Positions 11,680-52,647 of a stretch of DNA of 64,000 nucleotides are shown here, piece after piece. The position numbers and the translations under genes were made by a program. The notes under the pieces are model-generated. The model was not told the origin of the DNA, did not search any database, and saw only the letters and a program-made list of their open reading frames with translations. The first letter of the stretch is position 1. Every line of letters begins with the position of its first letter. Where the stretch lies: sequence record PV472050.1. One strand, given 5' to 3'.

Positions 11680-11711
11680 CTACAGGTAGGGGGATCTCCC
11701 CCTACCTGTAG
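11680..11711 (+). terminator. Terminator-like hairpin (14 bp)
   Basis: CTACAGGTAGGGGG-ATCT-CCCCCTACCTGTAG, just after the 10392 gene. Confidence 0.7.
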
Positions 11712-19092: not shown

Positions 19093-20432
19093 GTATGGAA
19101 TTACCACGTCCATTAGCTAACTTAATCGCCTTAGCAAACTCGGTGAATACACAACGGTCGGATAAGAAGATCCGACTGTTCGCAACGATCATTACTCCAG
19201 TGGAACAGATTGAACTGATTATCCCCACGGGGATGGCTCGGTTGTCGATGTATTCAGCGAACTGTTCCGATGACTGGCGTATTCAGGGCAACTTGCAACC
19301 CGGGGTTTACCTGAACCGAATCCTGCCCTATAAGGACAATCTCTTTATTGAAGTGGTCGAACGTCAAGGCCTTCATCAAACCATGAGTCGGTTCCGGTGT
19401 ATCCCCTTGAGTGACTCGAACCCTGAGATGGCCGGTAACAGTGTCCATTTGGCTCACCTGGAAGGTAAGGACAGTATTAACCTGATAACGGTTAAGTTCC
19501 AGATGATTGAACTGGGGTACGCTTTGCTGAAGAATGAGATGGTGTCTGACAAGCACTTAATGACCACCTTGGATGACGCGCTCCACTACCAACTCACCAA
19601 ATACGGTAAGCAACTTCAGTTGACGGGTAAGGATGCCTTTAGAGGGGTGGACATTGAACGCCCTATTGATAACCCTCGGGTCTTTAAGTTGATCGATATA
19701 CCGTCTGCGGTGCCTTTACCCCAGTTAGGGATGTGGATGCAGACCCATGAGGAGTTTGGGATCTATACCAAAGGCTTTGGGATGTATTACCAGAAAGGCC
19801 TTTGGATGATTTACCCGCTCTTCAAGATCGGTCGGTATGAGAACGGTAAACGGGTACTGAGTATTTATCGACTACCCCCTGATGCAGTCCCTACCCTCCA
19901 CGCCACGTACTTCACCCAAGACCGGGTTACAACGATCCTGGCAACCGGTACAGGTCGCCATGTGGATGGGGCTGACATTGATCGTCAGAATGAGGGTACG
20001 GGTAAACGGCTGATCAATTCGGACGCTGTCATGGGTGAAGTGGGTAACTACTACGCTAAGGGTCAGTCCGCATCTACCCGTCCTGATTCCCTCTCCGAAT
20101 ACCAAACCGCTAAGCGGAGCAGTGGGGAGGAGATTATACCCTTTGAACCGACTCCTACCAATAACCTCTGTAAGCACTTATCCGTGAATGCTTACAATGA
20201 TGGGACATTGGAAACGATTCAGTGGAATAACTCGAACAGGGACTTACTAGAACCGGGTATGCCTGTACGGTTCTTCTTTATGAGTGGGGATGATCGCTTG
20301 AAGTACAAGGAGGGTACTCTGATTGGTGCTCGTACTGAACTCATGAAGGATACGGAAAGTCCAGATATTATCTTCAGGGAACATTCTGCTTTAACCCTCT
20401 TCTTGAATGATAAGGTGTTTGATGCTCCTTAG
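19089..20432 (+). CDS. Baseplate hub-like virion protein (phiKZ gp101-like), about 447 aa
   Basis: Last gene of the conserved block, with a beta-rich composition. The assignment is from recalled synteny. Confidence 0.55.
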   Translation: MSMELPRPLANLIALANSVNTQRSDKKIRLFATIITPVEQIELIIPTGMARLSMYSANCSDDWRIQGNLQPGVYLNRILPYKDNLFIEVVERQGLHQTMSRFRCIPLSDSNPEMAGNSVHLAHLEGKDSINLITVKFQMIELGYALLKNEMVSDKHLMTTLDDALHYQLTKYGKQLQLTGKDAFRGVDIERPIDNPRVFKLIDIPSAVPLPQLGMWMQTHEEFGIYTKGFGMYYQKGLWMIYPLFKIGRYENGKRVLSIYRLPPDAVPTLHATYFTQDRVTTILATGTGRHVDGADIDRQNEGTGKRLINSDAVMGEVGNYYAKGQSASTRPDSLSEYQTAKRSSGEEIIPFEPTPTNNLCKHLSVNAYNDGTLETIQWNNSNRDLLEPGMPVRFFFMSGDDRLKYKEGTLIGARTELMKDTESPDIIFREHSALTLFLNDKVFDAP

Positions 20433-20780
20433 GTAATTTATCACTTAATGTATTTATTGTATTGTAAACTGGCTGACAAGCAGTGGGGAAAGGGGTTTAT
20501 TTCCTAATAAAGAGTGGAGTAGTTACGGAGTAACTACGACTTCCTTGTTCTCTCTTTTGATCTTTCTCTATTCTCTTTAGATCTTTCTTTTGATCTATAC
20601 GGAATACAGAGAGAGAGGGAAGAGAGGGAATACCCCCTTATACCCCCGGAAGGGGGATGAGGAAAAAGGAGAGAGAACCGTAGGTTAATCAGTATTCCAA
20701 CACGTTCTGATTAATACATTCAGCAAGCAGAGCTGAGAAGATTGCTCTGCCATTACTGATTCACTACCGGAGTAAATACC

Positions 20781-21513: not shown

Positions 21514-21540
21514 CCCTACCTAAGCCCAGCTTAGGTAGGG
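21514..21540 (+). terminator. Terminator-like hairpin
   Basis: CCCTACCTAAGC-CCA-GCTTAGGTAGGG. Confidence 0.7.
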
Positions 21541-22705: not shown

Positions 22706-22741
22706 CCCCTACCCCCTAGCGCTCAGGCTAGGGGGTAGGGG
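22706..22741. terminator. Bidirectional terminator-like hairpin (15 bp)
   Basis: CCCCTACCCCCTAGC-GCTCAG-GCTAGGGGGTAGGGG lies between convergent genes. Confidence 0.75.
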
Positions 22742-27250: not shown

Positions 27251-27284
27251 CCCTACCCACTCCCCTAACCGGGAGTGGGTAGGG
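27251..27284 (+). terminator. Capsid gene terminator hairpin (14 bp)
   Basis: CCCTACCCACTCCC-CTAACC-GGGAGTGGGTAGGG followed by TTATATTT. The stem is identical to the one at 1427-1467. Confidence 0.8.
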
Positions 27285-27320
27285 TTATATTTGCAGTTAT
27301 ACCGTTTATTGGAATATTTT

Positions 27321-27333
27321 AAACCTACATTAT
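27321..27333 (+). promoter_or_regulatory. Candidate phage RNAP promoter AAACCTACATTAT
   Basis: Same motif as at 21575 and 40325. It lies upstream of the operon carrying the RNAP subunit. Confidence 0.6.
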
Positions 27334-32588: not shown

Positions 32589-32620
32589 ACCTACCCTAGT
32601 GGATCTCCACTAGGGTAGGT
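32589..32620 (+). terminator. Terminator-like hairpin (14 bp)
   Basis: ACCTACCCTAGTGG-ATCT-CCACTAGGGTAGGT followed by a T-rich tract. Confidence 0.8.
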
Positions 32621-39657: not shown

Positions 39658-39733
39658 TCCGTGATAGCTCAGTAGGTAGAGCAACTGTTTCGTAAACAGT
39701 AGGTCCCGGGTTCGAACCCTGGTCACGGAACCA
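39658..39733 (+). tRNA. tRNA-Thr (anticodon CGT)
   Basis: 76-nt cloverleaf: acceptor TCCGTGA/TCACGGA, D-arm GCTC/GAGC, anticodon arm ACTGT-TTCGTAA-ACAGT, T-loop TTCGAAC and encoded CCA. Confidence 0.95.
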
Positions 39734-40247: not shown

Positions 40248-40268
40248 CCAGTAAACACCGTGTAAACA

Positions 40269-40301
40269 CCCTCCTACCTCCTTTACAGGGAGGTAGGAGG
40301 G
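40269..40301 (+). terminator. Terminator-like hairpin (13 bp)
   Basis: CCCTCCTACCTCC-TTTACAG-GGAGGTAGGAGGG followed by TTTATT. Confidence 0.75.
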
Positions 40302-40324
40302 TTTATTACGGTATAGCGTATTTT

Positions 40325-40337
40325 AAACCTAGATTAT
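40325..40337 (+). promoter_or_regulatory. Candidate phage RNAP promoter AAACCTAGATTAT
   Basis: Third copy of the motif, 30 nt upstream of ATG 40367. Confidence 0.6.
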
Positions 40338-42071: not shown

Positions 42072-42788
42072 TTGGAGAAGGTTGTGAAACATAAAGAAAC
42101 ACCCTTTCAACGAGCCAGCTGTGGTCATGTCCTTCAGGTCGGTGACAACGGGTCTTGCCATGTGGGGGACAACGGCACAGCCATCGCTGGAAAAAATAGC
42201 CTCGCCACCGCTGCGAACAATGGACATGCTGTTTCTGGAGACTATGGGACAGCCATCGTTGAACGCTTTGGTATCGCCTCTGCCGGAAATAAAGGCATGG
42301 CTATCGCCGGAGATTGCGGCAGTGCCACCGCTGGAGACCATGGTATCGCCACCGCGGGAAATTACAGCACGGCTACCGTCGGATACTTAGGGACTGCCAT
42401 CGCTGGAAAGAAAGGGAAAGCCACCGCTGGAGATTGGGGAACCGCTATCGTTGGACTCGATGGCGTCGCGTCTGCCGGAAAGAATGGTAAGATCCACATC
42501 CAGTACTTCGACAGTGAAGCCATTCGTTACCGCACGGCAGTTGGGTATATCGGTGAGGACGGTCTCGAACCTGGCGTTCCCTACCAATTGGATGAAAACC
42601 ACGAGTTCGTAAAGGGAGATAATGCTGTGACAAAATTCTCTACAGAGGGTCACGTGACTATACTCTTCCGAGGATTGGGCGTAGGTCTTAACAACGTCCA
42701 GGTCGTAAGGGTCACTAAGGGTATAGGACATCCCAAACCCTTTTTCCATATTGAGGGATCTGAAGAAGGGTTACCGTTTGCTTCATAA
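42072..42788 (+). CDS. Octapeptide-repeat (xAxAGxxG) beta-solenoid-like protein
   Basis: About 13 tandem 8-aa repeats are followed by 'RYRTAVGYIGEDGLEPGVPYQLD'. There is a GGAGAAGG RBS before a GTG start. Confidence 0.75.
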   Translation: MEKVVKHKETPFQRASCGHVLQVGDNGSCHVGDNGTAIAGKNSLATAANNGHAVSGDYGTAIVERFGIASAGNKGMAIAGDCGSATAGDHGIATAGNYSTATVGYLGTAIAGKKGKATAGDWGTAIVGLDGVASAGKNGKIHIQYFDSEAIRYRTAVGYIGEDGLEPGVPYQLDENHEFVKGDNAVTKFSTEGHVTILFRGLGVGLNNVQVVRVTKGIGHPKPFFHIEGSEEGLPFAS

Positions 42789-43065
42789 CGGGAGTGAATG
42801 GATTGATCAGGTCTTTGAGGCTAAGAAAGCTGTACTCTTCATTGAGTCACTCTACCCCCCTGTGACACCCGATAAAGAGACCGTGAAACTTACGGTGCCT
42901 GAGGATCAGCAAATCCTGGTTAAAGTACGTCGTGTGAATAAGCTGGCCTTGGATGCTGTTGTGTTCCACATCGATACCCTGGGTGGTGCGTATCAGGTAT
43001 CTTATACTGATCAGCTGACCTCCGATCTCAATCAATTGACTCATGTTGAGTTAGTGGCAATTTAA
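42751..43065 (+). CDS. Hypothetical protein lacking a clear start (possible frameshift continuation)
   Basis: The frame is open from 42727 to 43065. Its only candidate start near the 5' end is TTG 42751 without an RBS, and it overlaps a CCC-TTTTT run. Confidence 0.5.
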   Translation: MRDLKKGYRLLHNGSEWIDQVFEAKKAVLFIESLYPPVTPDKETVKLTVPEDQQILVKVRRVNKLALDAVVFHIDTLGGAYQVSYTDQLTSDLNQLTHVELVAI

Positions 43066-43076
43066 GGACGTCAATC

Positions 43077-43322
43077 ATGGCTAAAAAGAACCTTAAGGTG
43101 TTCAAGACCCACGGGGAATTCGATACGGAGGTGATTCGTCGTGCTCGACTTATCCTCGACGCCAGGGGTTACCGGGGGAAGATATGTGTGAACGCACTCG
43201 GTGAAAGTCCTGTATGGGATAGAGCGGGCCGTACAGTAGACGGTCATCGTCTGATCGACGACGACACCATCGCCGAAGTGGCTCGGGAGGTGGTTTATGA
43301 GAGCCTTGATCGAGGAGAGTAA
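43077..43322 (+). CDS. Hypothetical protein (81 aa)
   Basis: AAGGA RBS upstream. Confidence 0.7.
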   Translation: MAKKNLKVFKTHGEFDTEVIRRARLILDARGYRGKICVNALGESPVWDRAGRTVDGHRLIDDDTIAEVAREVVYESLDRGE

Positions 43323-43349
43323 GTTTTAACACGTTGACCGTATTATATA

Positions 43350-43680
43350 CGGACAACATGTCGTTTTAATCCGCGTCTGCGGGTCCCGCCTGAACTTAAG
43401 GGTGATAAGGTGTGGTACTCGTCGAGTATGAGCTTGGCAAAGCTCATACTCCGAACCCTATGGACGGTATAGCCGCTATCGTCAAGTCACACTGTTCAGC
43501 TATTGACCTGGACTTCAGTCTCCTTTTCGGTGCTGTCGGCGGGAAGGTTCTCGGACGGTGGGGCGGCTTGTGAAGGTGCTAAACTAGCGCTGGTTGAACA
43601 CCTAGCAAGTTAAGGGGAGGAGGGACAACCATCGGCTCTAAGCAGGTGGGTTCCTCCTCCCCTCCCTCCTTTTATTTTTT
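43350..43680 (+). ncRNA. Candidate novel structured non-coding RNA (about 330 nt)
   Basis: There is no ORF of 60 aa or more, and there are nested helices 43384-90/43538-44, 43390-95/43494-99, 43410-14/43488-92, 43424-35/43440-51 (12 bp perfect) and 43463-69/43477-83. TTGACCGTATTAT lies upstream, and a 3' hairpin plus T-tract ends the element. Confidence 0.6.
43614..43680 (+). terminator. Rho-independent terminator-like structure
   Basis: GGGGAGGAGG (43614-23) pairs with CCTCCTCCCC (43653-62), followed by TTTTATTTTTT. Confidence 0.65.
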
Positions 43681-43772
43681 TGTCTTAATGCCGTGTTACT
43701 CGACCGGTTTCTAACGGATACAGACTGTACGAATATTATGTCTTATCCCTGACTTACCAAGAGGTTATAGCG

Positions 43773-44248
43773 ATGTCGAAAAACAACGATCAGAAGAACC
43801 CCTCCACTCCTGAGGACGAGAAGGCTAAAGCGGTAACCACCCCTCCGGTGACTCCTCCTGCCCCAGCCAGCACCGCTCCCCTCAAACGTCTCCCAAAACC
43901 TCGAAAGACGAGAGTGAAGACGACAACCAGGCCTTCGACAACATTCTGATCAATGTACTGTCGCTCTATGACAACGGGGAATTCAATAAAGAACTCCTTA
44001 TTGAGATGGTGGAAGAAGTCCGGAAGGTTACCCGTCCGGGTCTTATCCCGGAAGAATACTACATCGACGTCGCCGTACAGCGTTATGTGGAATTCGCTAA
44101 ACGCAAGAAGATCGACCTGAAAAACCTGTCGATCCTGGTGGGTAATCCTGAAACCTCGGTAGAACTGCGTTCGCTGAACTTCTACCGTGCAATGGAAGGC
44201 CTGGCCCCGACCTTCTTTATGCCGTACATCATTGAGAGTAAAGAGTAA
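43773..44248 (+). pseudogene. Gene split by a -1 frame break (predicted about 158 aa if rejoined)
   Basis: ATG 43773 has a GAGGT RBS and stops at about 43948. The -1 frame is open 43829-44248 and carries protein-like 'DESEDDNQAFDNILINVLSLYDNGEFNKELLIEMVEEV' upstream of its first ATG (44006). Confidence 0.65.
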
Positions 44249-44259
44249 CCCCGAATAAA

Positions 44260-44301
44260 CCCCTAACCCCTAGCCCCTTTAACAGGGCTAGGGGTTAGGG
44301 G
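44260..44301. terminator. Bidirectional terminator-like hairpin (17 bp)
   Basis: CCCCTAACCCCTAGCCC-CTTTAACA-GGGCTAGGGGTTAGGGG lies between convergent genes. Confidence 0.75.
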
Positions 44302-44320: not shown

Positions 44321-47293
44321 TTAAGCAAAGGGATTGGTATCGGGACTGTTCTCTTCAGGATTGGTCCCATCCTCATTGCCTTCTTCACCCTCAGGAGAGG
44401 TTTCTTCTTCCTCCTCTCCTTCAGTACCTGCTTCAGAACCTTCCTCTTCCTCTATACCTTCCGGTTCTTCCTCTTCCCCGGGAGGGGTATTCTCTAAGGC
44501 GTTCTGATCCCCTTCAGGGAGATTCGCCTTATCCCTGGCTTCTTGAAGGTCTTTATCAGCCTTATCGATCTTCTTGGCGTGTGCCTTAATGACCTTAGCG
44601 TCCGCATCACGAGTCCCCGCAATCAGGGCTGCCAGGAACTCCCCGACATTTTGACGCTGACTCACAACGGCGTTCACCAAGGAAGCAAGACCACCACCCT
44701 TACCATCGTTAAGGATGTCGTCAAATGGCATCGGGAGGTTATAGCGCCTGAAGGCTTCAACCGTGAGCACTGACTTCACTTGCTCGTTAATCGCTGTCAG
44801 GTTCTTGTTATTCCCTTCTCCATCATCGGATTCGGGAATACCCAAGAGCTCAGCAATCTGTTTCAGGTTACCCGAATGACCTGCCATAGCGACCCACGAC
44901 TCCACCAGCTGACTCACCGTATCCAAACTGTCCTTGAGCTTAGCAGTCGTTTCAACAGAACTGGGGATCGGGAAGTGGGCTTTAAGGTTAGTCAAGAAGT
45001 CAACGAGAATGATTTTAATGATCTCTTCGTCAGACCCTTCCAGTTTCTCCTTACTGTCCGGTGACCAGAGTTTCTTATTCTCCGAGATCTTCGTCACCAA
45101 CTTCTTCATTAAAGGCCCGTTCACGTGAGCATGCTTACGTTCGAAGTCAATAATGAAGTCTGCCAGGCGTTCTTGCCAGTTAACGATTTGGTTCAGGAGC
45201 ATCTGGTGTTCAGCCAGGGCCTCAATCTGGAAGTTGTTCTGATCGTCACTGACATCCAACCAACTCCGAGACAGGTGGAAGTAGTTGGCGATCTTGTTCA
45301 ACAGCTCCGTACGACTATTCTGATCGACCGGACGGAAGATGTTCTTTTCCAATTGATCGAGCTGAATATCCGAGGCGGGGAAGTAAGGGTTCTCGCCCGC
45401 ATTGACTTTAACCGTTAAGGAGTTCTCCCTCAAGGTATCCACAATCATGGGGACTGACAGTTGAGATGTTGAGAGAATACTGTGCAACCGTGGGTTCGCT
45501 TCAAAGAACGCCGCCCTGGTCGCCGCAATCCCCGCAAAAGGCTCTGCGTCGTTCTCCTGGAGGTTAATCGTCATTTGGGTGTGGGGTGTAGCCGCCTCCA
45601 GGTTCGCCAACGCGTCAGCGAGGTCTAAGGCCGCTAAACGGGCAATGTGCATTTTAGCCATTTGAGTCAACGACTGACCAATCCCTAAACGGTTATAGTT
45701 CAGGGCCATATAGGTCATCGCTTCCCCAGGCACATACAAGCACCGAATCCCCTGTCTCCGGAAAATGCGTTGTAGGAAGATCTTGTTGGCTTCCTCGTCG
45801 ATCTCAATACTGATGTTCTCCCCACGACCACTGAGGACTGACTGCATGTACCGTCGAATGATATTCGATTTCGAGATCTCAATGAACTCGGTCATATCGA
45901 AATCACATTCTTTCCCTTCTTGGATTTGACGAAGCTGTTGAACCAGGTTGTTCGTACTACCGTTTTTAGGGCGGTTAGCAATCATACTGGCATTGCTTCG
46001 GTTACTCTGGTAGTACTCGAAGTCATTCGTATTCTTCAGGAAACTCCCATCCCGAGGATCCGTGAGTAGGATAAAATCCGTTTGAGTTCCATTACTCCCG
46101 TTAATGTGAATCGGAATCACCGCTTCACTGGGAACCTTGTAGGTAATCCCCCGTCCATAGGGTGCGATCTTCAAGGCATCGACGGGTTTACTGAATTGAA
46201 TGATCTGACTCACCGGATTCCGTTGAGGGAACAAACGGTTACTCAACTCGTTCAATTCACCTTCCGTTAAGTTAACGGTAGTGGCTTGAGGATCAGCAGG
46301 CTTCTTACGTTTGCGTTTCTTACCATCCGCATCCGTATAGTGCTGTTGATCATCTCCAGGGTTCGTACGAGCCACCAGAGCGGTTTGGATAATAAGGTCC
46401 AACCCTTCCGCTCCCGTTACCGCGGCAACATTCGACCGACGTTTACTTTCCTCGAACTTCTGGAGGTACAAGACCGCTGGGTTATCGGTCAGGGTAATAT
46501 CAATCAGCTGAGCCAATTCCTTCGAGACAGAGTCTTTATCGTCTTCAAAGATATTGAATTCCACTCCAGCATTCTGAGAAGAAGGGTTCAGGAAAAGGGA
46601 TTCTAGACCACTGACGGTGTTATTTGTATTATGACGGGTTCTATTACCGACAAAGACACCTTTGTTCTTCACCCGGACTTTACCGTCGACGACTACGAAC
46701 TCATGACTTAGCATCTCTTTAGCCTGGGTCATGAACTGTTCGTTACCGGCAACATCCCCGGATTGCTCCGCACCGTTGATCAAATAATCGAGACCTGGGC
46801 GACTCAAGTTAAACAGCACATAACTCCCGGTATTGAAGAGAATATCCGCGATCATTTCCCTCAAATCTTTCTCGATCTTATAGTCATTGGTATAGTAGCC
46901 ATCCCAGATGGTGAGGAGTTCATCATGCAATTTTGCATTTTTAATAGGGGACGGCTGGGTGTCGTAGGTGAGGATCTTGTCTTGCTTCCCATTGGGGTAG
47001 AGTAGACACGTCTGCCAGATCAAGGTGGCTTTGTCGATATACGGCGTGATTAACCGCAAATCAGTAGCCGCGTTAATGTTGTTGCTGATGATATTACTCA
47101 GCTTTTCCAGTTTGTAAGGGTTAACCGTCCGATGACCGTTGATCTCATCCCGTTCAGGGGATGAACCGTTACGAGGCGTAGCATTACGCAGGGTCGCTGC
47201 AACCACTGGGTTTTGAGTCGTCAACGATTTACGCAAAGCAGCAAAATCCACCTGCGTGTTACCCTTGGACTGTCTACGAGATGTATCGACCAT
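44321..47293 (-). CDS. Portal protein (phiKZ gp129-like), about 990 aa
   Basis: The size fits, the C-terminal tail is very acidic, and there are internal G-x-E sites (AGNE, SGLE, TGAE). It is arranged head-to-head with the baseplate gene as in phiKZ-like phages. The start is ATG 47293 or 47323. Confidence 0.75.
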   Translation of the reverse strand: MVDTSRRQSKGNTQVDFAALRKSLTTQNPVVAATLRNATPRNGSSPERDEINGHRTVNPYKLEKLSNIISNNINAATDLRLITPYIDKATLIWQTCLLYPNGKQDKILTYDTQPSPIKNAKLHDELLTIWDGYYTNDYKIEKDLREMIADILFNTGSYVLFNLSRPGLDYLINGAEQSGDVAGNEQFMTQAKEMLSHEFVVVDGKVRVKNKGVFVGNRTRHNTNNTVSGLESLFLNPSSQNAGVEFNIFEDDKDSVSKELAQLIDITLTDNPAVLYLQKFEESKRRSNVAAVTGAEGLDLIIQTALVARTNPGDDQQHYTDADGKKRKRKKPADPQATTVNLTEGELNELSNRLFPQRNPVSQIIQFSKPVDALKIAPYGRGITYKVPSEAVIPIHINGSNGTQTDFILLTDPRDGSFLKNTNDFEYYQSNRSNASMIANRPKNGSTNNLVQQLRQIQEGKECDFDMTEFIEISKSNIIRRYMQSVLSGRGENISIEIDEEANKIFLQRIFRRQGIRCLYVPGEAMTYMALNYNRLGIGQSLTQMAKMHIARLAALDLADALANLEAATPHTQMTINLQENDAEPFAGIAATRAAFFEANPRLHSILSTSQLSVPMIVDTLRENSLTVKVNAGENPYFPASDIQLDQLEKNIFRPVDQNSRTELLNKIANYFHLSRSWLDVSDDQNNFQIEALAEHQMLLNQIVNWQERLADFIIDFERKHAHVNGPLMKKLVTKISENKKLWSPDSKEKLEGSDEEIIKIILVDFLTNLKAHFPIPSSVETTAKLKDSLDTVSQLVESWVAMAGHSGNLKQIAELLGIPESDDGEGNNKNLTAINEQVKSVLTVEAFRRYNLPMPFDDILNDGKGGGLASLVNAVVSQRQNVGEFLAALIAGTRDADAKVIKAHAKKIDKADKDLQEARDKANLPEGDQNALENTPPGEEEEPEGIEEEEGSEAGTEGEEEEETSPEGEEGNEDGTNPEENSPDTNPFA

Positions 47294-47315
47294 TCTTAAC
47301 CTCTTCGAGCGAACT

Positions 47316-49544
47316 ATGGACAATATTGAATTTAATGCTTATCTGACTGACGTGTTTCGTCTAGTCAGAACCATGGTCATCAAAATAGAAGCCATCGCCC
47401 TACGGGATAACAAAGTCCTGGAGGAAGCGGGTTATCCTGTCGGGTTGGATAAAAGGACCTGGCGGTACTACATGAACCTGAATGGGGACTACCACCCCAA
47501 TGATCAGATCATGACTATTACGTCGATTGATACCGGTGACGAAATTGTCTTCAATAAAGACAACTTGGTGACCCATTTAGCGACGGCCAGGGAGTATGCT
47601 ACCGGGGGGTATTGGTTCAATCGCTTGGTTGAACGGTACCCGGGACAAGCCGAATTGATTCGCGGCATTATTGCACCGATCCCCTACGAGGAGACCATAG
47701 AGGCCGAGGACTATAAGATCCTCAAATACAATAAGGCTTTGGTACAGTGGAATGAGGACCAATTGATCCCTCAACTCCAAGCTTGGATCTACAGTGAAGT
47801 GGAACAAGTCTTCCGCCACGAATACCGGTTAACAGATGACTTGATGCTCCCTTTCGGGATTATGTTGCTGTATGCTGACCTGTTCAAAGCCATTTGTACC
47901 ATTCGGCATGAAGCCATTGGGACGCGGTATGCTCACGATTTCTATATTTGGAGTCACATTGATTCCTACGGAGCGTTCTCCAAGTACAAGGAAAGTTTAG
48001 ACCGGTATCAAACCATGTGGTTGTACCGCAACATTGCGTGGATTGATAACAACCCCGGTCAGCAGTATACCTTTGGGAAGTTGATGGACAACCTCCTGAC
48101 CCACGCTCGTATTCCCCTGGCCAAGTTCGATATGGTGGAGAATACAGCGAATCAGTTGGAAGAATTGGTTCCCAATCCCCTGTACCGTAGACTCCAGCTT
48201 AACTTGCAGGAAGACTACGGTCGAGAAGCCACGTTTATCGATACCCAACACATGATCGATAAACAACAACCCTTGGCAAAAGAGAACCCTAATCAAGCGT
48301 CCATGTACTATCACGACGCGTTGCAGAAAGGGAAACACAGTAACCATTCTGAACTGCCCACGAAGACGTTGGAATCCAAAATGATGGATTACACCAACCG
48401 TCACATCGATACCAAGATGTCGGTGGTCTTTAATGAATGGATCTACTTAACCGCTAAGGGGTACTTTAAAGGACGTATTCTGGTTACCGATCCTAAATCC
48501 GGTAAACAGGTCAGACTCCCGGTTGGGGATGCCTACTACGTGTGGCGGTACTTGGTGGACTTCGCCAGGGATCAAAAACCGGTCAACATCTGTCCGGCGT
48601 ATTACCACAACGTATTAAAAGCGGTTCCTCCCACCCTGGAAGCCTTGATTGATATTGGGGGTCCTTCGTTCATTACGCCGATTATGGCGTATGACGTCCG
48701 TAACGTGTGGATTCCGGTGAACACCTTTATTGCACCGGAATACCTCATGGCGTATTCTGAAGAAGTCTACGCACTCATGTGGAAACACAAGAAAATGTCG
48801 AGTCAGTTCTACGACTTGAACATGCGTGCGCGGATGGAGAACACCACGAAGTTCATGTACGAGTCTGGAATCGCCACGATCACGGACCTGACTACCTACC
48901 AACAACTCCTGAACCGGTATGAGTTCGACTTTACGGAATACACTCCGGAAGAAGCCCGTAACTTTGCCTGGGAGATCTTCAAACGCATCACAGGTTGGGA
49001 CAGCAACAATAACCCGTCCTTGAGGATTAAACAGTCAAACCTCATTGATATCATGATGCAGCTGTCGTCTTACACCATCCAGGTCATTAAGGAAATCGAT
49101 GACGGCACGGACTTAACGGAGCTCCCCAGTGAGATCTTTATTGGGGATCCCCGGTGGATTGGGAAGGGAAATGGCGCCTTCGGGGATTACACCCATGTTC
49201 AGATGGATATTCCCACTCATTTCGATGGTGTTCGTACCGTTGAAGAGGTTCATCCCCTGGTTGAACCTATGGTCCCTGAGGTGGCAGCGATTGCAGAAGG
49301 GTATGGAGTAGCGCGTAGTGATGATATCTTTGAACGGGTGGATCTCAGTACCAAACTGTTGGACTACGCGGTTCGGATAATCGATGACTCCTATTTCAGG
49401 CTGTTACCAGCAGATCGTATGGGCCTCCCTGAAACTAATTACGGGCGTCTGGTATTTAAAGAGCTGCATAAGGAAACCCCTGTAGGTCCAGCGGACTATG
49501 GTCGCCTGGTGTTTAAGGAGCTGAGTCCCCCCGACGGTGATTGA
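47316..49544 (+). CDS. Baseplate/virion structural protein (phiKZ gp128-like), 742 aa, with a truncated C-terminal repeat region
   Basis: 'WRYYMNLNGDYH' and 'SLDTxEEIVF'-like motifs near the N-terminus are recalled from jumbo-phage baseplate proteins. It is divergent from the portal gene. Confidence 0.65.
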   Translation: MDNIEFNAYLTDVFRLVRTMVIKIEAIALRDNKVLEEAGYPVGLDKRTWRYYMNLNGDYHPNDQIMTITSIDTGDEIVFNKDNLVTHLATAREYATGGYWFNRLVERYPGQAELIRGIIAPIPYEETIEAEDYKILKYNKALVQWNEDQLIPQLQAWIYSEVEQVFRHEYRLTDDLMLPFGIMLLYADLFKAICTIRHEAIGTRYAHDFYIWSHIDSYGAFSKYKESLDRYQTMWLYRNIAWIDNNPGQQYTFGKLMDNLLTHARIPLAKFDMVENTANQLEELVPNPLYRRLQLNLQEDYGREATFIDTQHMIDKQQPLAKENPNQASMYYHDALQKGKHSNHSELPTKTLESKMMDYTNRHIDTKMSVVFNEWIYLTAKGYFKGRILVTDPKSGKQVRLPVGDAYYVWRYLVDFARDQKPVNICPAYYHNVLKAVPPTLEALIDIGGPSFITPIMAYDVRNVWIPVNTFIAPEYLMAYSEEVYALMWKHKKMSSQFYDLNMRARMENTTKFMYESGIATITDLTTYQQLLNRYEFDFTEYTPEEARNFAWEIFKRITGWDSNNNPSLRIKQSNLIDIMMQLSSYTIQVIKEIDDGTDLTELPSEIFIGDPRWIGKGNGAFGDYTHVQMDIPTHFDGVRTVEEVHPLVEPMVPEVAAIAEGYGVARSDDIFERVDLSTKLLDYAVRIIDDSYFRLLPADRMGLPETNYGRLVFKELHKETPVGPADYGRLVFKELSPPDGD

Positions 49545-52609: not shown

Positions 52610-52647
52610 AATCCTACCTGTAGCCTGCAAAGGCTACAGGTAGGATT
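52610..52647. terminator. Bidirectional terminator-like hairpin (17 bp)
   Basis: AATCCTACCTGTAGCCT-GCAA-AGGCTACAGGTAGGATT lies between convergent genes. Confidence 0.8.

Follow-up and report, generated by a model that had tools for sequence, protein, structure and literature searches.

A constrained non-coding stretch beside the portal locus of Elvirus jumbo phages carries local hairpins and a strong terminator

Elvirus phages are nucleus-forming jumbo phages that infect Pseudomonas aeruginosa. The window analysed here, a stretch of 64,000 nucleotides, comes from an Elvirus member, Pseudomonas phage MIZ-Pa99 (PV472050.1), and is 94-98% identical by blastn to phage EL and to eight other Elvirus records. 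Near the portal gene, the gap between EL ORF101 and ORF102 is filled by a non-coding unit of about 360 nt on the plus strand (43323-43681), which runs from the stop codon of ORF101 to the end of the T-run of a terminator. An earlier, sequence-only reading of the window had singled out most of this gap as a candidate large structured RNA with a promoter of its own, lying between an accessory island and the portal locus, and the motifs that it quoted are all present where it placed them.

The upstream neighbour, ORF101 (43077-43322, plus strand, 81 aa), is the last gene of the ORF098-ORF101 unit and a distant homologue of PHIKZ010. Among Elvirus genomes it is hypervariable, with a nucleotide identity of 87-100% and clearly distinct alleles. 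ORF100 (42072-43065, plus strand) matches Pfam DUF4774, contains nine 24-nt (8-residue) tandem repeats at 42174-42477 and has one frameshift in the window relative to EL. On the other side of the gap, a 92-nt spacer containing a TATG, the sequence described as the late-promoter core of phiKZ (PMC7598289), precedes ORF102 (43773-44251, plus strand, 158 aa in EL), which has a ribosome-binding site and whose true start is likely to be the ATG at 43773. Compared with EL, ORF102 carries one frameshift in the window, and the MIZ-Pa99 record lists it as two short genes; this may reflect an assembly error because ORF102 is intact in the other genomes. A perfect 17-18-bp hairpin (44260-44301) lies between ORF102 and the convergent portal protein gene, EL ORF103 (44321-47323, minus strand; PHROG 3004, head and packaging). 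ORF103 matches PHIKZ129 (9xpe_M, 12 chains) and 'Portal Protein gp36' at E of about 1e-29, and the earlier identification of a portal locus is therefore correct.

The gap had also been called ORF-free, and this held up, as it contains no ORF that is conserved across the relatives. The longest ORF starts with a GTG, spans 43412-43573 (53 aa) and has a stop present in 5 of 10 relatives; by tblastn it was found in Elvirus records only, with no protein homologue beyond the genus. Two small ORFs placed in the gap by automatic annotation are truncated or frameshifted in some relatives. A small conserved ORF was rejected on the grounds that each candidate is broken in some relatives and that the changes are mostly non-synonymous, and a decayed gene on the grounds that translated pieces of the gap have no protein homologue outside the genus.

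The unit is known from about a dozen nearly identical Elvirus genomes only. A search of 50,697 phage records with blastn in distant mode returned 10 Elvirus records and no others, scans for exact patterns returned EL itself only, both in GTDB genomes (two scans) and in IMG/VR, and an nhmmer profile of the unit found no copy in 24 portal-gene loci from IMG/VR and JGI metagenomes whose portals are 39-67% identical. Within the approximately 200 kb of EL there is no paralogue. Protein searches with ORF101 and ORF102 for intermediate relatives yielded only proteins that are at least 83% identical, and the four extra contigs that came from them added few variable sites; the collections searched contained no Elvirus-like phage with a portal 70-95% identical. 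In the distant relatives the ORF102 homologue also lies beside the portal gene, with another gene directly upstream and no gap, and the unit is therefore part of an Elvirus-specific island. A complete Elvirus-sized contig (JAOCIH010000006.1, 208,496 bp) was found in an assembly labelled Pseudomonas aeruginosa (GCA_029843445.1) and is probably phage DNA that was co-sequenced with its host.

An intrinsic terminator, defined as a stable GC-rich stem-loop with a T-run immediately after it on the transcribed strand, closes the unit at 43613-43681 on the plus strand, where a stem at 43613-43626/43650-43663 is followed by a T-run at 43670-43681. This feature had been noticed before and proves to be very strong, with a stem of -37.4 kcal/mol and a T-run on the plus strand only. 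It corresponds to inverted repeat I1 and has a purine-only 5' arm, a pyrimidine 3' arm and a nested inner hairpin; its two variable inner pairs are preserved by wobble, its pair probability is 1.0 in four genomes and its 12-nt tail is T-rich. A simple terminator scanner missed 43613-43663 because the loop contains the nested hairpin. Elsewhere the intergenic DNA of the window holds a family of perfect 12-18-bp hairpins built on CCTACC/GGTAGG-type stems, often followed by TATA-rich letters and no plain T-run (1427-1467, 11680-11711, 21514-21540, 22706-22741, 27251-27284, 32589-32620, 40268-40302, 44260-44301 and 52610-52647), which are presumably the usual terminators of the phage. The terminator at 43613-43681 is unlike this family in having a purine-only arm and a long T-run.

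The promoter proposed for the unit consists of TTGACC together with the AT-rich palindrome GTATTATATAC (43334-43350, plus strand), and its promoter function is unsupported. The only defined Elvirus promoter class has the form ATTTyAAACCTAnATTATy followed by ..GTG on the plus strand, and on a matrix made from the nine annotated EL sites the true sites score 32-39 bits, whereas the proposed site scores -5 bits and ranks 1945 of about 400,000 positions. A sigma-70 scan of 43323-43420 found no site on the plus strand, and TTGACC is not accompanied by a properly spaced -10 hexamer (16-18 nt apart). The TTGACC hexamer also differs among relatives (TTGACG, TTGATG), while the 11-mer GTATTATATAC is unchanged in all genomes compared. 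A de novo search for hexamers enriched between genes brought up the stems and T-runs of terminators, the core of the known promoter class and Shine-Dalgarno motifs, and no class into which the proposed site would fit. On the minus strand the same letters yield the best sigma-70-like match near the unit, at 43369-43342 (TTAAAA, 16 nt, TATAAT; 10/12), and it points into ORF101 in antisense. For a phage with no dependence on the host RNA polymerase this match is of doubtful relevance. Elvirus-type phages use their own RNA polymerases for transcription, independently of that of the host (PMC7598289).

The class promoter nearest to the gap lies at 40319-40337 on the plus strand, upstream of ORF098, and is an exact match to ATTTyAAACCTAnATTAT; it is likely to be the start of the unit that ends in the 43613 terminator. 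A scan between this promoter and 43613 found no terminator-like site on the plus strand, hence none between ORF101 and the gap, and transcripts of ORF098-ORF101 must therefore enter the gap. With the nearest class promoter at 40319 and no terminator in between, the gap is most simply read as the 3' tail of the ORF098-ORF101 unit. A conserved motif is expected upstream of presumed early operons in such phages (PMC7598289) and this, together with the homology of ORF101 to PHIKZ010, would agree with an early accessory unit. Promoters of the EL class are themselves very sharply defined: the matrix revealed about ten further unannotated sites, with scores down to about 10 bits, and all sites of the class are on the plus strand and followed by ..GTG, including those at 27315-27333 and 40319-40337 in the window.

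The claim of the sequence-only reading that was most striking in its detail, a set of properly nested long-range helices closing a multiloop, is not supported by the analysis. Perfect long-range pairs are as frequent in the unit as in shuffled sequence (one 7-mer, 6 six-mers and 23 five-mers versus 1.3, 5.5 and 23.0 in shuffles), and the mean pair probabilities of the helices in four genomes are 0.00-0.20. In each of the helices R1, R2 and R3, and likewise in the 'outer' helix, a single pair is polymorphic; every one of these four pairs is broken, in 1-5 of the 10 genomes, and none is compensated. The C at 43390 had moreover been counted in two helices simultaneously, and RNAalifold picked other long-range pairs, with a covariation term of -0.14 kcal/mol. 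A large structured RNA is thus unsupported, its long-range helices being at chance level and broken by natural variants. There is nevertheless an excess of folding and it is specific to the plus strand: the fold z-score is -3.2 with the terminator included and -2.1 without it (6 of 200 shuffles equally stable), and in GC-adjusted MFE the unit ranks 4th-9th among 1158 windows on the plus strand and 313th or lower on the minus strand. Several natural changes retain pairing on the plus strand only by means of G-U pairs, and the G-U pairs of both the compound hairpin described below and the terminator are confined to that strand. The eye-catching nested fold is what would be expected by chance, and what is solid amounts to two or three local hairpins and the terminator.

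A second ORF-free gap in the window, at 20430-20780 on the plus strand between EL ORF071 and ORF072, folds more strongly than the unit at 43323-43681, with a z-score of -4.9 that none of 100 shuffles reached. It has an AT-rich start, a long imperfect inverted repeat of CU-rich and GA-rich arms and a GC hairpin, gives no Rfam match, and may represent either a structured RNA or an element that acts as DNA.

Among the local hairpins, the perfect 12-bp stem with a GGCA loop (43424-43451, plus strand), which is not followed by a T-run, had been pointed out before and is indeed non-random: a stem of this length was reached in none of 500 dinucleotide shuffles, in which the longest stem averaged 5.1 bp. 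Its pair probability is 0.67-0.99. A single metagenomic genome has a double compensatory change from A-T to G-C in this hairpin, and the same relative also has a change from G-C to G-U; one pair near the loop is broken in 4 of 10 genomes. Directly 5' of the terminator lies a compound stem-loop of 47 nt (43565-43611, plus strand; -17.3 kcal/mol, pair probability 0.62-0.98), of which the earlier reading had seen only a part. It forms only on the plus strand because of its three G-U pairs; one change from U-A to U-G keeps the pairing, and one pair is broken in phiRU. Across the robust local helices 5 of 7 variable pairs are still paired, one of them via the double change. The 7-bp hairpin GACGGTA/TATCGTC (43463-43483, plus strand) contains a G-U pair and is weak; it and the 4-bp hairpins are invariant, with pair probabilities of 0.0-0.47.

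The gap also varies less than its surroundings. All homologues of the unit are at least 96% identical, such that statements on selection and on structure rest on some 20 variable sites. Ten genomes differ from one another by a pairwise mean of 2.2% in the gap body, compared with 3.2-4.7% in two nearby intergenic stretches and with 6.5, 10.7, 6.9 and 4.6% at the third codon positions of ORF100, ORF101, ORF102 and ORF103, respectively. Segregating sites number 18 of 290 (6.2%) in the gap body versus 118 of 752 (15.7%) at the third positions of the four flanking genes (Fisher p = 2e-5), which is 2.5 times rarer, and they are also rarer than at the third positions of the portal gene alone (p = 0.024), while the difference from the adjacent 92-nt spacer is not significant (6.2% versus 8.9%, p = 0.35). 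Long invariant runs (43366-43410, 43450-43496 and 43500-43538) lie mostly outside the robust hairpins. Taken together, the few sites suggest that the gap is under moderate purifying selection. The genomes are mosaic around ORF101, which complicates the comparison of rates: phiRU has an ORF101 identical to that of EL and a gap that differs by 4%, indicating recombination breakpoints at the locus.

The earlier failure to assign the unit to a known RNA family was borne out, in that at the gathering threshold no Rfam 15 family matches it, among them tmRNA, RNase P, 6S, SRP, group I/II introns, riboswitches, RsmY/Z, CRISPR repeats, pRNA and large bacterial RNAs, and the one hit over the whole window is a tRNA at 39658-39730. 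When 43200-43850 was scanned permissively, with E up to 10, only miRNA-type matches below threshold appeared, all on the terminator hairpin and at most 23.5 bits strong versus a threshold of 83. ARAGORN finds neither tRNA nor tmRNA in the unit. GGAC occurs five times, a count equalled in only 1.3% of windows, and GGACGGT and GGACAAC occur twice each, an enrichment that was noticed post hoc, after inspection of the sequence. A CsrA/RsmA sponge of the RsmY/RsmZ kind was rejected, with GGA present 8 times against a background of 7.6, the GGAC motifs lying in predicted stems and no Rfam match. Also rejected were a replication-origin-like element, as the stretch has neither such a composition nor iterons; a MITE-like element, as the unit is present only once and the 8-nt inverted repeat at 43421/43697 is no more than chance would give; and an RNA antisense to phage start regions, as in a crude search among 51 genes the best duplex is -45.1 versus -43.6 +/- 2.5 for shuffles.

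The unit is non-coding, Rfam-negative and constrained, and it folds on the same strand as its terminator, and therefore a function at the RNA level is plausible. The reading we favour, with about even confidence, is that 43323-43681 would form the 3' end of the ORF098-ORF101 unit, constrained and non-coding, as a 3'UTR or an sRNA derived from it, organised as local hairpins. Transcription from the 40319 promoter would pass through ORF098-ORF101 into 43323-43681, where the RNA would fold as independent local stem-loops, namely the 12-bp hairpin, the 47-nt compound hairpin and then the very stable terminator. The hairpins may protect the 3' end of the accessory-gene mRNA, and the terminator would block read-through into the ORF102/portal module and insulate it. 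The terminal part, comprising two tandem hairpins and the U-tail, may accumulate as a stable 3'-derived sRNA with a function in trans; the position of the unit fits that of an operon-end sRNA, with no terminator separating it from ORF101.

Why a purely cis role at the 3' end should call for constraint over about 290 nt is not obvious. The stretch could instead be an Elvirus-specific, trans-acting non-coding RNA of some 330 nt belonging to no described family, for example an RBP decoy or sponge acting through the GGAC motifs and the long invariant single-stranded runs. On the sequence evidence we hold this as a possible but doubtful reading. It would make the stretch an independent gene, lacking the large nested fold, transcribed from its own phage-RNAP promoter near 43334-43350 as far as the terminator and acting on a partner that is a protein or an RNA, a version that we likewise think improbable. 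In its favour are the invariance of the 11-mer GTATTATATAC, AT-rich elements of about 10 nt being typical of jumbo-phage early promoters (PMC7598289), the constraint on a region with no Rfam family, the possibility that the repeated GGAC, GGACGGT and GGACAAC are protein-binding repeats, and the precedent of sRNAs with a promoter and a nearby terminator in 201phi2-1 and phiKZ (PMC11512511). However, the proposed promoter falls far short of the only defined class and includes a variable TTGACC, no terminator lies between ORF101 and the stretch, no excess pairing with the 51 start regions and no paralogue in EL were found, and the GGAC motifs, noted after the fact, lie in stems and not in loops, while GGA itself is not enriched.

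A DNA-level element, such as a site for a dimeric protein at the 12-bp inverted repeat or a shared boundary at which homologous recombination swaps variable accessory genes, and less likely a replication or packaging signal, is in our judgement distinctly unlikely. The perfect palindrome is non-random, its symmetric double change preserves DNA symmetry as well, ORF101 alleles differ where the gap is conserved, the phiRU pattern implies breakpoints here, and the stretch sits at the border of an island that is missing from distant relatives; but a folding excess that is confined to one strand and helped by G-U pairs is not expected from a site in duplex DNA, and the change from G-C to G-U in the hairpin keeps RNA pairing and breaks DNA symmetry. 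Nor are there iterons, tandem repeats, an AT-rich unwinding region (GC is 0.51-0.53) or a related copy elsewhere in the genome. We give similarly little credence to a functionless spacer or the remnant of a decayed gene, in which only the terminator would be functional and the conservation would reflect close kinship. The high identity of all homologues, a 53-aa ORF that only half of the genomes keep open, as might happen in a decaying gene, a constraint not distinguishable from that of the neighbouring spacer and a fold z-score of only -2.1 outside the terminator would all fit it. Against it stand the rarity of variable sites relative to flanking and portal third positions, a 12-bp hairpin far above chance with a compensatory change, and translated pieces that have no protein homologue outside the genus. 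Least probable is a cis-regulatory leader of ORF102, of the attenuator or riboswitch type, for although the classic attenuator layout is present, with a structured RNA, a terminator and a short spacer ahead of a ribosome-binding site and its gene, the best alternative pairing of the terminator 5' arm reaches only -16.5 kcal/mol versus -37.4 kcal/mol for the terminator, and a transcription attenuator was rejected. There is also no Rfam match to a riboswitch or leader, the ORF102 homologue of distant relatives adjoins the portal gene with no such leader, and the spacer has its own TATG, the phiKZ late-promoter core (PMC7598289).

The practical outcome is mainly a correction of the nested-fold claim. 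A single-copy non-coding stretch that is specific to the EL genus and under purifying selection is also a reasonable place in which to seek a jumbo-phage non-coding RNA; to our knowledge, the mapping of such RNAs is only beginning and none has a known function.

Several known systems invite comparison. The pRNA of small phi29-like podophages, whose target is the connector, is also a phage-encoded structured RNA, and the unit lies near a portal gene. The suggestion of a packaging-RNA analogue nevertheless finds no Rfam pRNA match, even at E up to 10, and ORF102 and a terminator separate the unit from the portal. ToxI-like antitoxin RNAs consist of tandem direct repeats of about 34-36 nt, after which come a terminator and the gene for the toxin. 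Here too a non-coding RNA, a terminator and a gene of about 160 aa follow one another, but the unit has none of the tandem repeats that the idea of an antitoxin mimic would lead one to expect; a type III antitoxin RNA was rejected, with Tandem Repeats Finder returning 0 rows (minimum score 30) and ORF102 having no PADLOC match, and in relatives that lack the RNA ORF102 is kept beside the portal gene. The PeSL cassettes of T4-type phages are conserved promoter/stem-loop elements of about 50-70 bp that flank variable genes, many per genome. The unit resembles them in being conserved non-coding DNA with a stem-loop that borders variable accessory genes of a large lytic phage and shows traces of recombination around it, and differs from them in being about 360 nt long and single-copy.

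The 3'-end reading finds a parallel in DicF of the Qin prophage, an operon-end sRNA that shares an mRNA terminator. Like a DicF-type sRNA, the unit stands at the end of a polycistronic unit, has a terminal hairpin and U-tail after another hairpin, and has no convincing promoter of its own; it differs in having no excess complementarity to phage start regions. In the related jumbo phages 201phi2-1 and phiKZ, long-read transcriptomics has mapped sRNAs with a promoter and a nearby terminator (PMC11512511). These are shorter than 250 nt, have measured 5' and 3' ends and share no sequence similarity with the unit, which is known here from its sequence, and the one sRNA reported to be conserved in EL lies elsewhere, upstream of a tail gene (PMC11512511). 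They are nonetheless, like the stretch between ORF101 and ORF102, short non-coding units of Chimalliviridae that are bounded by intrinsic terminators and are intergenic or derived from UTRs (PMC11512511).
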